Part shown: positions 54,577 through 64,000 of the stretch, in pieces
How the letters are laid out: each line of letters opens with the position of its first letter
How positions within the stretch are numbered: position 1 is the first letter of the stretch
NCBI GenBank assembly: GCA_977020255.1
Contig: CDROCS010001558.1
Coordinates: 372,001-436,000, forward strand
Length of the DNA stretch: 64,000 nucleotides
Direction of reading: 5' to 3'
Source: Obrimoposthia wandeli
Taxonomy: Eukaryota
Translations under genes and position numbers: made by a program
The notes under the pieces: generated by a model
Told to the model about the DNA's origin: nothing
Database searches by the model: none
What the model saw: the letters and a program-made list of their open reading frames with translations, nothing else

Positions 54577-57500
54577 TCTAAAATCTATTTACTTTTAATA
54601 CATTATCAAAAAAATCACACACTTCTTTATTAAATATTTTGTAAAAAACATTAGAAGCTTAAAGTAACTAAATATTGAAAAATGAATTTAATTTCAAGAA
54701 AATCAATCATAAAAGTTTAATTGCAGTTATGTTAAAAATTAATTTGATTTATTAACTGACAATTAAATTTAGTTTGGTACATCCAATGCCAATCATTCAT
54801 TCTTAAACTGAAGTGATTTTAGGATACCACTGGTTTATTTTTGTACTTTGTACCCTGAACTTTTATTTTAAGTTAAATTAATTTAGAATAATTGATTAAA
54901 TTAATTAAGTATCCGCAATTGTTACTATATCGCGATTTATTTACGTGTGTGCGTGGTATAAATTTACATATAAATAATTGTTATCTCCCGGTTTGTATGC
55001 TTTTTTCTATGGTATTTGTATAAATCATTTAGCAATTTTAGTATGATTAGCTGATCCAGTGATTTTATTACTGTTAAACTAGAGATTCGCGACATATCTT
55101 GCAAATTTACTATCACTTTCACTTGATGCACAATCTAAACCTTTGAATACCTCTGGAAGTCTTCGATTTGCTAATCATTTCAGTAACCCTTAAAAATAAT
55201 AAATAGAGAATGCCAAAACAAGTTTATTTTAAATATTAATAATAAAACATGATAAAACAATATAGTGAAACATAAAAAAATAATAATTTAGTATTAGATT
55301 AAAAATCTTTAAAACTATCGATCAGAGTATTTAGTGGAAGAGCATTGTGAAAAGCGCGATTTTAAAAAGTTATGTTTATAACAAAATTAAAAAAGAATAT
55401 ATTACATGTATGAAAAAACTATTTAGATAATAATCTTAGGGAATATTTGATATACAAGAAAATGTTTGCAGTACCCTTCAAATCACTTCGTCAAGCCACA
55501 TTATAGGAACATAGGTTAAAGGCGACTGATCTAATGCATCAAATATTCACATTCATTACTTACTGTTTCGTGAATTCCTCTTGAATGTACGTATTCTTAA
55601 TGTATTGAGCAGGCACACTATATATATATAAAATGATTATATTCTTACGAAAAGTGTTTCAATTGTTTTTGACAGCCAGAGATTATTGTCTTAATCAAAT
55701 TTGTAAAATTCGATGCATTATATAATATTTTTGTAATCTAACTAGCTTGCTACAGTGTTTATGTAAAAAGTTGCTCTACGTTTATTGTCATCTTACATAG
55801 TTTTGTGCTATACTATCTTATATATACTGTACTCCTAATCAAAATTAATTAAATATTCCAGTTTTGAAACTTAATGTCGAAATTTTACAATAAAACGTTT
55901 ATCATCCATTAATAGTCATTTCCATATTACTTCATAACATTTGTATTAACTCGCCATTTACCATTACATTCTATTAAACAAGAACAGATTTAAAAATTAC
56001 ACTATTGTTTAAGGTGAAATCGTTAAATAAATTAATAAAATTGTTATATATTTAAACTAATTTAAATTAACTTTGCACCGTAGAATCATGCCAGTGTCAA
56101 ATTGAGAGCTTTATGTGTTCATATTTTTATCCTACTATAATTGTTATTAAGCTTAAAAATATATTTGAAAATGTACAAATTATTATTTTTATTTGTATTG
56201 AATAGATAATTTATAAATTTAAATGTTACATTTCTTACTCTATATATAAATTTTATCATAAAATAATGTAATGAAGTCTAAAAGTATTTAAAATGTTCAT
56301 TGATAAAAATAATTATTTAAAAAATAAACAATTTGAAAGTTTGCCTCTATATAAAACATTTTGAACTTACTTTCGTTAAATTACCCTAAAATATAAAACC
56401 CATGAAAAAATAATTCTAAAAGCTTCTAATTTAATTTACAACTATATTTAAATAAAATTAAAATTTTAATGTTTTAAATTAAAATTCTATCATTAGATAA
56501 AGTACAAAAATTATAGACATTTTGATTACACAAACGTTAAAGTGTTTTAGGATTAAGAAAACAAAATTTTGTATCAAAGACGAAATAAAAATTATTTTAA
56601 CAAAAGATATAGACCAATTGAAATTAAATTGAAAAAATTAACATTATTTTAAAACAAATAAAAGTGCAATAATTCAGGTCATATTCTTAACTAAAAAATG
56701 TCCCAATATATATAAAATAATATAGTACACGAATAAAACATTTTACATTCGTAAAGTAATAAGATTATCTTTGAAACAATTAAACGAAAACTTAAAATTG
56801 ATTATATAAATAAGTTTCATGTCTTAATAAATATTTAGTTATTTACATTCTTACAAATAAAAAAGAAATATAATTTAATGTTTAAAAGACGCAAAAATAA
56901 TAAATAAACATTGAAATAAAACATTTTGCACTTTAAACATCAGAAAAACAACTAATAAAATGAAAATTTATGGAAATCAAAATTAATAATAATTAGAACG
57001 ACCCATTTCATTATATTTAAGTACATTTCGTTTAAATTTTGAAATTAATTATATATAACATCAGATTCTTCTTTGTTCAAGATTTCTACTTGTTCATCTA
57101 TTTTATTTCCCAGTTCTTCTTATGAAACAACTGAAGTCTATCATAAATGACATATTTAAGTATTTTCAACATTTATACCATCAGGAGATTATAAAGACCA
57201 TTTCAGTAAATTAATATTGTACATTTGAATGACACCAACAACCCGTTTGGCTATGTGAGGCATTGCATTATTATGTTGGTATGTGTAAGGTAGTCCTAAC
57301 GTATCGTTAAAATGTGCTAAAATATATCATTCAAATTACAATTCATATGTTTCATCAAATGAAAATTCCAATAAAAGTTATAAAACCGTAAACCATAACT
57401 CCTCCTTCCAAAATACTCACAAATCTCTTAAACATGTGTTGGGAATTAAAATATTACAATTTAAATTTAAATCAATTTATCAAAGTGCCCACAGTCGAAC

Positions 57501-57591
57501 AGCAATTGTTGTCAGTGATGTCCTAGTTTTATCTTGTGCTTCGCGGTTGGAAAATTGCCCGCGAAGTAGGAGATAACACAGAAGAAATGAC

Positions 57592-58942
57592 TGTTATATG
57601 TAGAATAGTTACGTATGACTAATTTCCAATACTGTGCTTCTTCCAAAAGTCAGCTTCGCAAAATGTTACAACTCTGGGCAATAAATTCGATCTCCAATAT
57701 TGTGCCTCCTCCAAAAGTTAGCTTTGCAAAATGTTACAACTCTGGGCAATAAATTCAATCTCCAATATTGTGCCTCCTCCAAAAGTTAGCTTTGCAAAAT
57801 ATTACAACTCTGGGCAATAAATTTAATTTCCAATATTGCGCTTTTTTCCCAAAGACTAAAAATGCAAATCTTGTTCTGACATATATTTGTAATACTTCAA
57901 TAAATTAGGAAATTTGTTTTTTGTAACAAATCACTATCGACGATTGCTATTTATAGCAATCGCCCAGTCTAAATGCCAAGAGCGGCGGCAGCAACCGTGT
58001 GCTGATTCAATCGACGATTGCTAAAAATAGCAATCGCCCAAAAGGGAAAAACAACAAGTGTTGCCAGACCGGGACCAAATCAGACACACAGGCCCGGTAA
58101 AACAACGTTGGCGAATTTGTGACATATACAAACACACAGATTGCCCAGATAAAATTCGGCACTTAAATTTTTAGAAAATAGACCGAGAAAAGAGAGATAG
58201 GTAGATTATAGCAATTAAAGATTAAACTAAAACATCTAAAAGTAAAATTGATGATATTATGTGTTTGTATATCTCTGAGGTTCCTGGAGTTACACGGAAG
58301 AAGGTGGGTAGAAGTTACACTGACTAGCTTATTGCAACTATGATACACAAAAGTCGACATACAGGCTTCTGGCGAAGAGTTCTTTAGTGACAATTTGTGT
58401 TGGTCATCTTAAGATGAGATGGGCTAGGTCAGTAGAAAATCAGGGTTGTGTTATGCAGAGAAGTAGACAGAGACAAGGACATAGGGTTGCAGCTAGAACT
58501 GTTTCACAACCCAGGCTGCACCGGCACAGGCAGTCACGCAGTCGACCCATTGGTTTTGATGGCAGCGGTAGACTTGGGTTTTCTCGGGTCTGAGGCGTAC
58601 TGGCCAATACACACAGGGGCGGCTGGGCAAGCGGGAAATTTGTTGTCAGGGAGGCAACTGCTTCCGAGCCGGGATGATTGAAGGTTGTTGCCTCTCCGGA
58701 TGATGATGAAGGGAAAAGGTCTGCTGCTACTGGGCGGTAATATTTTTATGATAAGAATCCATTTTATCAACCGCTTTTTTCGCCGCCTTCCTGATGAGCC
58801 TGGCAAGGCGAAACGGGCTAACAACCCGTCGGAGGCTGAAATTTGAAAAACCTCCCTAATTGTGGGCACTTTAGATTAGTTTATAAAATGTCAATTTAAA
58901 TTGACTTTCTTAATTAATTTAATTTTAATTAAAGACCCAACA
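57592..58942 (+). mobile_element. Solo-LTR-like element carrying a hammerhead ribozyme (copy 1, 1351 bp)
   Basis: Termini TGTTATAT...CCCAACA; 4-bp TSD TGAC (57588-57591, 58943-58946); internal 68-bp tandem repeats (57626-57850); hammerhead 112 nt from the 3' end. Confidence 0.85.
58785..58836 (+). ncRNA. Type I hammerhead ribozyme
   Basis: Stem I GCCTTC/GGAGGC; core CTGATGA; stem II GCCT/AGGC with loop GGCA; GAAA; stem III CGGG/CCCG with loop CTAACAA; GTC cleavage triplet (cut after 58830). Confidence 0.95.
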
Positions 58943-59159
58943 TGACTGCATCCTCTATCGATTTTTTCTGCCTATCCAATATTAAGTGAACCACATACAC
59001 ACATGTTATTTTACTGCTTCTATCTTTGTAGTGGTGCCAATTTACTTGTGTGTCTGCAAATTTATGTAATGTCACTTATAATAGAAAAATTAATATAAAA
59101 TTGTTTGGCATAGAGAGATTTGTTATAATTTCTAAAACTACTTTTTTAAATTGCTACAG

Positions 59160-59460
59160 AAAAGAAGAATTATTGCTGATCATATTTATTACTGTTATTA
59201 CAGAAAACAAAGAATATTACTGACCATATCTATTACTGTTATTACAGAATACAGCAATTATTGCTGACCATAATTATTACAGAATACAGAAATTATTGCT
59301 GACCATATTTATTACGGTTTTACAGAAAATAGAAATTATTGCTGACCATTGTTATTGCATTGCTGATTAAAACAGAATTTTAACTGATAATTATTTTATT
59401 GTTATTGCTGATTATTATTTGTTGCTGTTATTACTGAAAACAGAAATTATTGCTAATGAA
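59160..59460. repeat. Degenerate ~40-bp tandem repeat
   Basis: Recurring AATTATTGCTGACCATATTTATTACTGTTATTACAGAA-like units. Confidence 0.75.
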
Positions 59461-61972
59461 TTAGTTGGAAATAATAATCAAATATAACACATGCCCAATC
59501 TTTTTTGTTTATTTCCATGCCCAAAAAAATAATAAAAATCTGCCTTCCTCACTTAATACTAAAAATAGTGAGTTGCATACGCCGCTCTTCAATTTGTGTC
59601 AATTGGTATTTCTTTTTATTTTCAGTCAATTTTTTTCCTTTAGTATATTGCGTAGTATAAACTACTTACTTTCTTTAAGAACTTATTGGTGGGTACATTT
59701 TCTGAAATATTTATTTTTATTTTTAACACAGTTGTATTTTGCTTTTTTATCTCCTTATACTTTATTTTAATTTGACAAACAAGATTTTGATATTATATCG
59801 AACTGGAACTTTGACTTATAATTTTGATTTAGATTTATTCATTTTGGGTATACTAAGTTTGAACTTTTTAAAATTTTCCGTTATTTTTTTTCGCACATTT
59901 CTTTTTTGGCAAATAAAATACTTTATGGAATCAGGAACTAATTTTCCATTCAAACATTCAATCTAAAATATATTAACTCAGAAGTACTATAAATAAACTT
60001 AAAAATAAGATTGTTTCAATGATTAACACTGTTTTATTCGTGAGTTTTAAAATATAATTCCATAGATCTTTATTTAAAATAAAAATTTATAATTAAACAG
60101 CATATTCATTTATTTGATATAAATATCAATTGTTACTTAAACAAATAACTTATTTATTATATATTTTACTTTAAAAAATCATTAATAATTAAACAGATTT
60201 TTACTCACAAAATCTGTAAAATATTTAATTTGTTTATTATATTAAAAAAATACAATATAATTACAATAATGTTTACAATAAAATATTACAATTTTTGAAA
60301 TATATAATAATTATATCTACTTACAAGTTACAGTAGATTAACACTTAAACTTTCAATATATTTTCTTTTAAAGGTCATAAATTAAATTAATTAATACCAT
60401 GTGTGTAAGAAAATGCAGATATTTCAAAATAACCTTGTTGTAAAAATCAATTTAAACATAATTATAATTTTTTAACTATAATATTTTACAATAATAAAAT
60501 TGTGAAACCATTTTATGTTTGTCAAAATGTTACTAATAATTAAGAACCAAAAATAAAATTAAATACATGTTATTTACAATTTAGTAATAAATTATTATTT
60601 ATACTTTTCAGCAGTAAATAATCATACATTTTGTACCAATTTTTTAGTTAGATATTTGACCAATTGTTGCCTTGCAAAAAAAATGATATAAATCTATGGT
60701 TTTATAATGAAAATATGCTTAAATCTGTGATTTTACAATACTTTTAAGGTTTAAATATCATATGATACCTTAAAAACAGTAAAATAATGTAAAAAAATAT
60801 TCAGTATATTTGTATACTATCTTTTTTATTACTGGGATCATAGTAATAGAAACAAAATTTTCAATTTTTACTCATAACTATTACCTAAAGTGGTCAAACG
60901 ATCGATTATAAAGAACATTGAGAGCTTTTATATTTCAATACTTTCTTTTACATAAGATTCTCTAAATCTGATACGAATACGCCACTTCAAAGTTTTCAGT
61001 AAATACTGATTGACTGCTGATTGACTAAAGAAAGCCTACATGATGGTTTAATTAGTAAGTATTACATGGTAGGTAAACAAGTTGATAAGAATAGAGCAGA
61101 TAAGTCTAAGTAATATAGTAAATAATACATTTTAGAGTCTTTACATATAATACTTATATTAACTTATTTATTATTTAAATTTAATACATATAACATAGTT
61201 ACAATAAAAGCTCAGTCTAGCACACGTCATTTTCGCACATGCTGCACCGGACAACAGAATGACAAGAAAATACAAAGGCATTGTACGAAGAACACTTTTG
61301 TTTTATTTTTCGCTCAAGCTCCAAAGTGCTCTGGCAACTTTTCCGTTGTTGTGGCAGTCAGTTACAGTTGTTCCTTAATAGGTGACTCGACGCAAACCAA
61401 CTTGGTTGATGCCCGAATCATTGCACAAATGTTGGTCAGTCGTGGTCGTCTGTTAACAAGTGGCGGCACATCTCATAGCCAAGTTTAACTTTAAATTTGT
61501 AGTCAGTTTCATTGTCGGCTGAGGATTCGTTGTTGAAGATCATGCAGCGTAGCATGCAGTATTCAAAAGAGGAAATTCAGTGCATAAAGTAATCGCTAAC
61601 ATTTGTATTTTGTAGCATATGTTTGGAAAAACTTGTCCAGAATATCCACTTCGGATTTAGTGAGGCTGTAAAATTGGACAACCGGGCTTTTACCTTCCAG
61701 CAAGTTTTGTTCAGACCAATGTTGAGATAACAGAAGAAGAACAGTTAACTTTTTCTTGTTTCAGAATGAACATAGCGTATTGAAAATGTTGTCCTTGTAG
61801 AAGTAAATTGTGTCACCGTGTGTCCTGTTCACTGAACTTTTTGCTGTATGTGGAATTTCATGTCGATTCAATTTTATGGTTCCTACTATAGTCGTTTTTG
61901 AGCAAGAAAACGCTAGAACAGTTTTAGTGACACAAAGAAGTTATCAGCTGTCGACGTTTCAAAATACATACG

Positions 61973-63059
61973 TGTTGGGATTTAAAATTAATTAATTTTT
62001 GTCAATTTAAATTGACATTTTACAGAGGTCCCCACAATCAGGGAGGTATTCATTATCAGCCTCCGACGGGGTAAAAACCCCGTTTCGCCTTGCCAGGCTC
62101 GTCAGGGAGACGGCTAGATAAGTGGTTTTTACCACAAAAGTTTTCTGCCCAACTACTACCACCTCTCCAGTCAGCAGCAACAACACCGGCTGCACTATCT
62201 CTGACGCAAATGTCACTCCCTCGCTCATCTCCGTCATCCATGAAGACAACCTTTAAGTACAGCGATCTCTCTCTCTCCCTCTCTCCTCCACCTTCCTCTA
62301 TCGTCATCCAGAGAAACTGCATCATCATCATCATCAGCAGCAGCAACATCATCATCATTCACACATTTCGGGATTTCTCTTCTGATTCAGCGGCCACATT
62401 GGCTATGCGTGACAGTGTGTCTCAACTACAGCAGTAACTATAGTGGCAGCAGCATCAGTCGATAATGTGGTATTGACCTGCATCCATGTGGGCGACTTAT
62501 CTCCCTGGCGCCATTATCTCTCCACAACCGCAGCTATCTCCATTTGCTACCAGCTATCTCTACCTGCCAGATCTTCTCCTCGTGTCGGAGTCGTGCCTAC
62601 CGGTAGCGGTCTTAAAATATGTATATGGCCTACCAAATTCCCAACTGTGCAGATGCAGTGCTGTATGTCTGGGATTAAATATAAATCCTGTATAGCAGCT
62701 AAAAATAAACACACAAAAAATTTACTTTGAATTTTCGACAAAAATTATTGAACATTGAATATTCTGCGAAGTATATACCAAAAAATTACAAAACTATTAA
62801 ATCAAATTGAAACTATTTGAAATTATTTGATCAACAATTTGGAAACTATTAAATCAATTTGAAACTATTTGATCAACAATTTGGAAACTATTAAATCAAT
62901 TGAAAACTTTTTGATCAACAATTAGCAAACTATTAAATCAATTTGAAACTATTTGATCACCACGGAAACAAGAAACAATTTCATTAATATTGTTGCTATT
63001 ATTATTTGATCATCAATATAATTTTGTTTGATTATTTGTTGCTTTGGAACAATATAACA
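61973..63059 (-). mobile_element. Solo-LTR-like element carrying a hammerhead ribozyme (copy 2, 1087 bp)
   Basis: On minus, termini TGTTATAT...CCCAACA; 4-bp TSD TACG on plus (61969-61972, 63060-63063); 42-bp tandem repeats (62791-62960). Removing it restores the piggyBac frame VMELRMYFETSTADNFF. Confidence 0.88.
62059..62111 (-). ncRNA. Type I hammerhead ribozyme
   Basis: Minus strand GTCTCC CTGACGA GCCT GGCA AGGC GAAA CGGGG TTTTTA CCCCG TC GGAGGC: intact core, changed stem I/III sequence with pairing retained; cut after the C opposite 62065. Confidence 0.95.
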
Positions 63060-64000
63060 TACGTAGCTCCATTACTATTGCCAAAGGAATTGAGGATAAT
63101 ACAGCCTTCTTTTGAAGATATAGAGTGTCATAGCTGATGTAAACCAGATATATCAAGGAGAATGCATTGTTGTTGATCACCCAATATATCTTAATGCAAA
63201 ATTTACCAGCTTTTGTAGGTATGCATTGTCTGAAGCTTACACATTCATGAAATTTGATAAACTGATCATCCACGGTCAATAATGGTTCTCCGACGAATAG
63301 TTGCTTTGAAGAGCATCCTTGAGAAGAATGACAATGTTTCTTATCGCAGCAATTTTTTTACGATTTATCGTGACGTAAAGTACCATTAAAACAGAAAGCA
63401 GTTTTCAACTGCTCAAATTGTTAAACACACATCGTCACATATGCTTTGAATCCACCAAAATTGAATAGTGATATGAATGTATTTTATTTCAAAATCTAAA
63501 ATACCTTGATAAAAACTGTTTCAAATGTTTTGAAAACCATATCAAACTTCAAGGTAAAGTAGAAAATTGATCAAAAGTGTTTAATAATAAAATATTTTAT
63601 GAAAATTTACCGTTTTACAACATTCAGTCTGTAATTTATTTTAAAATATATCAAGTAAATTCAACACTTGTTAAAATTATAATGTCAAATGAAATCTGCT
63701 ACATATAGCATAGATCCTATATCAACTGTATTTAAATATGAAAAAATACTAGGAAAAATACTAACGGCTGTTGTTAAGATAAAACAGTCAAAAATTATGG
63801 TTGAATTCCCTGAAAGTTAATAATTGCATTAATAAAACCATTGATCAAAGTCATAAATGGAGATAAAATAAACCTATCAAATAAAAGACATAGTTAGAAG
63901 AAAAGGTTTACTCCCTATTTACCAGACAGTTTATATAAGTTAGCATTTGTTAGGTTCCAAAACGGACAGTTAAATTACGATAATAAATAAAATTGGCTAT

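Follow-up and report, generated by a model that had tools for sequence, protein, structure and literature searches.

The 1,087-bp insert at positions 61973-63059 of the stretch of the Obrimoposthia wandeli genome analyzed here (64,000 nt; contig CDROCS010001558.1, positions 372,001 to 436,000 of the forward strand; hereafter the window) carries a hammerhead ribozyme motif inside a long terminal repeat (LTR), which raises the question of what kind of element it derives from and of which RNA such a ribozyme might cut. In the original prediction, the insert was regarded as the second copy (copy 2) of a hammerhead-LTR element that formed a unit of its own, with copy 1 in the same window. We found that it is instead a solo LTR of a large coding retroelement family, the LTRs of which occur in pairs about 13.5 kb apart, and that the hammerhead lies antisense to the genes of this family.

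On the plus strand, which is taken as the sense strand by analogy with full-length family members, the sequence reads ...ATACG and then, from 61973, TGTTGGG; ATATAACA finishes at 63059 and TACG follows. Read on the minus strand, the unit starts with TGTTATAT and finishes with CCCAACA. The target-site duplication TACG occupies 61969-61972 on the left and 63060-63063 on the right, and TG..CA termini together with a 4-bp duplication are the hallmark of an LTR retrotransposon. The variable part of the LTR holds 42-bp tandem repeats at about 62806-62962 (repeat family D7, start-to-start spacing 52, 42 and 42), whereas the counterpart repeats of copy 1 are 68-bp units. The termini, the TACG duplication, the hammerhead at 92 nt from the CCCAACA end and the difference between 42- and 68-bp repeats were all found where the original prediction had placed them.

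The sequence that received the insert was predicted to be a piggyBac transposase, cleanly interrupted. When the unit and one TACG are removed from the minus strand, the reading frame ...VMELRMYFETSTADNFF... is indeed restored; the matches of the two stop-free flanking pieces to PF13843, however, remain below the curated cut-off of 22.4 bits. The piece upstream of the insertion (63061-63357, minus strand, ending in ...VMELR) scores 15.6 bits (E 0.0099, profile positions 118-174), and the downstream, frameshifted piece (61764-61940, minus strand, with a GTIKLNRHEIP motif) scores 13.3 bits (E 0.053, profile positions 215-263). Because these weak matches are colinear and present in both flanks, the host is taken to be a piggyBac-like transposase pseudogene, decayed by stops and frameshifts. 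Empty sites are represented by at least eight piggyBac-like paralogs (68-78% identity), the flanks of which are contiguous without the 1.1-kb insert, although the junction can be read in them only to within about 13-25 nt and not by nucleotide. DNA-like contigs from one sample gave depth and junction support and showed no empty allele of copy 2. The unit at 61973-63059 is a solo LTR: an LTR retroelement entered a decayed, piggyBac-like transposase by integrase-mediated insertion, and LTR-LTR recombination then left the single repeat behind.

The minus strand of this LTR contains a type I hammerhead motif with an intact core (62053-62122). Helix I is formed by GUCUCC (62111-62106) and GGAGGC (62064-62059) and is extended distally by UUAUC/GAUAA (62121-62117 with 62057-62053); the core stretch CUGACGA (62105-62099) is followed by a helix II of 4 bp with a GGCA loop (62098-62087), the core stretch GAAA (62086-62083) and a helix III of about 5-6 bp (62082-62066), and C17 (62065) is the last base of GUC (62067-62065). 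All 15 core pairs (6, 4 and 5 bp in the three helices) are Watson-Crick or G.U, and the combination of CUGACGA, GAAA and GUC with an open helix I and loop-closed helices II and III is that of type I. From the hammerhead consensus, self-cleavage is predicted between C62065 and G62064, 92 nt from the LTR edge (CCCAACA). A strict hammerhead scan of both strands of the window returned nothing beyond the two LTR motifs of copies 1 and 2. The motif belongs to a conserved block of about 180 nt (61973-62160), which comprises the LTR edge, an AT-rich stretch, a 16-bp palindrome GTCAATTTAAATTGAC (62001-62016) found in nearly all family copies, a GGAGG..CCUCC hairpin and the hammerhead itself.

Within this block (62060-62037, minus strand, and the same place in all copies), the GGAGG of helix I has a second potential partner in a CCUCC that is conserved 13 nt downstream. 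A hairpin of these two stretches would be in competition with the active fold of the ribozyme.

A genome-wide search with the 24-nt ribozyme core (one mismatch allowed) gave 3,507 matches in the 1.35-Gb assembly and none with the reversed control, and many of the same-strand core pairs were spaced about 13.5 kb apart. Five core-bearing LTR pairs share 99-100% identity along 0.4-1.3 kb, two of them with clean 4-bp duplications, i.e., CTTG (L057/L058) and AAAT (L060/L059); the spacing, the identity and the duplications together indicate that these are the LTRs of full-length elements, which measure about 14-15 kb. Of 30 ribozyme loci sampled without bias, 11 adjoin the shared internal region, 6 adjoin the primer-binding side and about 13 look solo (9 of the latter with matching 4-bp duplication candidates). 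The hammerhead-bearing LTRs are 0.8-1.35 kb long, bear 4-bp duplications and are dispersed rather than tandem, and in the DNA-like contigs the ribozyme module is covered 1,400-7,000 times as deeply as unique sequence. At three loci (C529, C3247 and C1650), LTRs of the copy 2 subfamily adjoin one common internal start, which identifies the window copy 2 as a solo LTR of the coding family; its hammerhead is intact but probably just a passenger.

Copy 1 (57592-58942, minus strand) is a solo LTR of another subfamily, with the hammerhead on the plus strand (core 58791-58813) and the duplication TGAC (57588-57591 and 58943-58946). The two copies can be aligned over only 99 nt around the ribozyme, with 81% identity. 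Both subfamilies occur at many loci with differing flanks, differing 4-bp duplications and TG..CA ends, which argues for integrase-type insertion, as the original prediction had supposed for at least two subfamilies. Its further claim that the motif is no chance match also holds, since neither subfamily has lost the hammerhead, which persists in about 3,500 copies.

The orientation of the family was derived from its genes and its primer-like site. In five separate full-length copies, an open reading frame (ORF) for a DEDDh exonuclease (RNase_T, PF00929), the last gene of the element, lies next to the CCCAACA side and antisense to the ribozyme. The exonuclease ORF was located at L031:4913-5446 (minus strand) and at L057:1972-2772 (minus strand), where it is intact with 266 amino acids; a word-indexed protein search with this ORF gave one weak homologue only. 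In C1650, the strand opposite the hammerhead encodes, in order from the ATATAACA to the TGTTGGG side, a gag (a weak Retrotrans_gag match plus a CCHC zinc knuckle), a mononegavirus-type fusion glycoprotein (Monjiviricetes_fusion, E 5.6e-28) and the exonuclease (RNase_T, E 4.2e-08). No ORF was found on the ribozyme strand past the LTR. Directly after the ATATAACA end stands TT-TGGTGAGCTCGACCC, an arrangement typical of primer-binding sites (PBS). Gene order and this site together imply that the sense strand reads TGTTGGG...ATATAACA, and because both lie opposite the ribozyme strand, the hammerhead is antisense and near the 5' edge of the LTR, in its U3 (unique 3') region. The 3' end from which the ribozyme had been said to lie 92 nt was therefore defined on the non-coding strand and is, in terms of the element, the 5' (U3) edge. 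Across the family, the LTR hammerhead is antisense to the genes and lies about 92-112 nt inside this edge, a placement from which it can be expected to act on antisense transcripts only. One candidate, C1650:1349408/1359805, had been considered as an LTR pair in ribozyme orientation and was rejected, because its flanks and ORFs show the genes running opposite.

Some copies, such as C1650, are without pol. An exhaustive protein search with a piece of the glycoprotein retrieved relatives at 44-51% identity (L070-L074, from ENA ERZ25039515 contigs and from DNYW01000170.1 of GCA_003506685.1), which encode on one strand gag, the glycoprotein, protease, reverse transcriptase (RT), RNase H and integrase (RVT_1, rve) and an RNase_T ORF, with the glycoprotein before pol and the RNase_T after it; in one ORF of 2,855 amino acids the glycoprotein is fused with pol. 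The pol of these relatives, on which the assignment rests, points to a Ty3/Gypsy-like family with the envelope gene placed before pol. Intact copies of this coding, envelope-carrying LTR family are apparently autonomous.

The PBS-like TGGTGAGCTCGACCC is not known to fit any tRNA 3' end convincingly. No polypurine tract (PPT) was recognized in either orientation, nor before the sense 3' LTR, where the junction reads ...TTTGTTTACCCCCATAGGAT and then TGTTGGG with no purine-rich tract (L057, L046, L060, L062, L065 at about 1643-1654; L058, L045, L059, L064). The L062/L063 pair has short LTRs of 432 bp and an outer edge with a PBS-like TCACCAA, and may be an aberrant product of reverse transcription.

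How strongly the ribozyme itself has been constrained can be judged from the comparison of copies. When 24 LTR tails from several subfamilies are compared in ribozyme orientation, the final ~180 nt reach a mean pairwise identity of 0.6-0.94, against 0.06-0.35 upstream; as 22 of these tails were picked by the core pattern the peak is partly inflated, but the flanks of the core, which were not selected for, are conserved too. The peak takes in the ribozyme together with the 92 nt that separate it from the LTR edge. The block of ~180 nt is the sole part conserved between subfamilies with otherwise unalignable LTRs, and most genomic matches of the unit span only its last ~300 nt. Among 41 distinct ribozyme variants the core is invariant and 95.3% of the pair cells are standard, compared to 26-53% when the partners are slid; four pairs have changed on both sides, a level matched in 3 of 500 shuffles. 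Most of the both-sided changes are contributed by a further hammerhead lineage of greater divergence, located in other LTR-like repeats (L015:1007-1062 and L069:79-132), which shows compensatory changes in all three helices, e.g., U-A to C-G in helix II and GCCUCC/GGAGGC to AUCUCC/GGAGAU in helix I relative to the main family. In helix I, three different C-to-U changes produce U.G pairs that recur in several copies, among them young elements whose paired LTRs are identical; on the sense strand these pairs would read as A.C mismatches. Mismatches, A.C or other, are confined to single decayed copies. Since the propagated U.G pairs are valid on the ribozyme strand only, they favor selection on RNA of that strand.

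The explanation that best accounts for these observations jointly, and that we consider moderately probable, is that copy 2 is a solo LTR of a large coding family whose conserved U3-edge block contains an antisense type I hammerhead controlling antisense RNA. Such RNA might start at an antisense promoter in the LTR or in the internal region, or might read in from the DNA on either side. The transcript would cut itself between GUC and G, about 92-112 nt before passing from the LTR into the body of the element, and the antisense body RNA would thereby lose its capped 5' part and begin with a 5'-OH; where both LTRs are present, as in a full-length element, two cuts would free a unit-length antisense RNA. 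The benefit for the element would most likely be control of its own antisense RNA. A more specific version, in which the hammerhead is an anti-silencing device of an envelope-carrying retroelement that cuts read-in antisense RNA before the element body, seems doubtful to us. Its targets would be any transcripts entering the element in antisense, for example a piRNA-cluster (PIWI-interacting RNA) precursor or a convergent host transcript, and the antisense body RNA, uncoupled from the capped or processed 5' part and bearing a 5'-OH end, would be expected to form less double-stranded RNA and to give less phased small-RNA production against the element; the ribozyme might here act alongside the element's own DEDDh exonuclease.

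Several points weigh against the control of antisense RNA by a functional hammerhead. The Rfam search gave no hammerhead match at the gathering score and no usable one at E-value thresholds (the best, of 21 bits to Hammerhead_3, was mis-threaded and far from the cut-off of 48.5 bits), no PPT was recognized beside the LTRs, and the Ty3/Gypsy assignment is borrowed from the pol of relatives. The covariation comes mostly from two or three diverged sequences; the other family members are of recent origin, which makes their mutual conservation hardly informative. In the window, a third LTR (TGTTGGG..ATATAACA, 57437-57591 and 58947-59489, plus strand, duplication CATG at 57433-57436 and 59490-59493), which is split by the nested copy 1 and is uninterrupted by it in contigs of other copies of this third type, keeps the terminal block and an upstream hairpin (CTTCGCGG..CCGCGAAG) and has no hammerhead. 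A relaxed hammerhead scan of 78 kb of the relatives (L070-L074) found none either; these contigs contain no LTR pair, so that their LTRs were perhaps unsampled. The ribozyme had been called ancestral, which applies within this group of LTR lineages but does not extend to the third LTR or, as far as they were sampled, to the distant relatives. In the older copy 2 subfamily the ribozyme is fully intact in 9 of 27 copies, a proportion that would be expected if dead copies decay neutrally after insertion. A search for RNA runs gave only three runs of DNA-like contigs from one sample, which showed neither RNA ends nor strand information. Finally, the whole 180-nt block and not the ribozyme alone is conserved, and part of the constraint may therefore act at the DNA level or on the sense strand.

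The decay in old copies and the absence from one related LTR lineage and from the distant relatives would also agree with a hitch-hiking fossil, that is, a repeat with a ribozyme (for instance a retrozyme or Penelope-like fragment) caught once, in antisense orientation and near the U3 edge of an ancestral LTR, and copied passively since then with no function for the element. We regard this as unlikely: it could draw on the purely DNA-like nature of the runs and on the youth of most copies, which makes their mutual identity uninformative, but it is at odds with the motif-holding block being the only conserved part between otherwise unalignable subfamily LTRs, with an invariant core across lineages that show compensatory changes in all three helices, and with propagated variants that are G.U pairs valid on the ribozyme strand only. 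The same G.U pairs, being A.C mismatches on the sense strand, and the same compensatory changes, which preserve the hammerhead helices, speak against a sense-strand or DNA-level role of the block (integrase recognition, plus-strand priming without a PPT, or a structure of the 3' untranslated region) with the hammerhead reading being incidental. That conservation runs over the whole ~180 nt to the LTR edge, including the 16-bp palindrome and hairpins that are foldable on either strand, and that no PPT stands beside the LTR, would fit such a role; a full core with three well-placed helices is, however, very unlikely to arise by chance, as estimated from the fixed core bases and paired positions, and no false hammerhead match turned up on either strand of the window (strict scan) or of the 78 kb of related loci (relaxed scan), which leaves this role very improbable in our view.

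Equally little probability attaches to the framing of the original prediction as an animal LTR retrozyme, in which the ribozyme strand would be the functional RNA of a non-autonomous element and LTR-cut transcripts would circularize and template retrotransposition. In its favor, the LTR around the hammerhead shows TG..CA ends and a 4-bp duplication, which is also the design of plant retrozymes (PMC4918200), two ribozymes flank every full-length unit, and pol has been lost from some copies (C1650). Against it, the strand opposite the ribozyme carries both the genes and the TGG-type primer site, the internal region codes for gag, glycoprotein and exonuclease instead of being short and non-coding, the motif is of type I and not type III, and the unit between ribozymes measures about 13.5 kb rather than 0.6-1 kb. 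Antisense control remains the reading that we prefer. If the ribozyme is active, it would give a retroelement a route to process or disable its own antisense RNA and provide a testable tie between self-cleaving RNAs and the control of endogenous retroviruses by antisense or small RNAs. In genome annotation, such hammerheads are markers of LTR edges and do not indicate retrozymes.

Plant LTR retrozymes are short, non-coding and non-autonomous, give circular RNAs of 600-1000 nt and carry a type III ribozyme, the strand of which also bears the PBS and PPT (Cervera et al. 2016, PMC4918200). The present family resembles them in having a hammerhead in each LTR, TG..CA ends, 4-bp duplications and, judging from its relatives, a link to Ty3/Gypsy, and differs in that it belongs to an animal genome and that the ribozyme is of type I and antisense to the genes and the PBS-like site of a coding element of ~14 kb. 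The type I hammerhead repeats of metazoans are described as tandem units of 170-400 nt without LTR, PBS or PPT and with longer duplications (Cervera and de la Pena 2020, PMC7229834), and animal type I hammerhead repeats have been linked to Penelope-like elements (PLEs; 2026 preprint 10.64898/2026.07.22.740005). With these non-LTR retrozymes our family shares a canonical type I motif, a stable helix III, a low-GC repeat context and an animal genome, but here the motif lies within true LTRs with 4-bp duplications. The hammerheads in the pseudo-LTRs of PLEs are minimal, have a helix III of 1-2 bp, act as dimers and lie on the sense strand, and PLEs encode an RT plus GIY-YIG and are not known to show an integrase-type 4-bp duplication. 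Both are cases of type I hammerheads in the terminal repeat of a retroelement; here, in contrast, helix III has 5-6 bp, the element is of the integrase type and the motif is antisense.

Chuvirus-type glycoproteins are found in insect Ty3/Gypsy elements (PMC7642597) and a DEDDy exonuclease ORF3 in rotifer LTR elements (PMC5408684), and no report of a ribozyme in the LTRs of such glycoprotein- or exonuclease-capturing elements was found with the text terms searched. These are likewise LTR retroelements with an RNA-virus-type glycoprotein or a 3'-5' exonuclease ORF, whereas in our family the glycoprotein precedes pol (in the relatives), the exonuclease is of the DEDDh (RNase_T) type and a hammerhead is present in antisense. 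A full-text literature search brought up no account of an LTR element of animals with a hammerhead in antisense. Known hammerheads of eukaryotic mobile elements, i.e., those of plant LTR retrozymes, animal non-LTR retrozymes and PLEs, lie on the strand of the mobile RNA; the family described here differs from them as a coding, envelope-carrying LTR element with a canonical ribozyme on the opposite strand in about 3,500 LTR copies.
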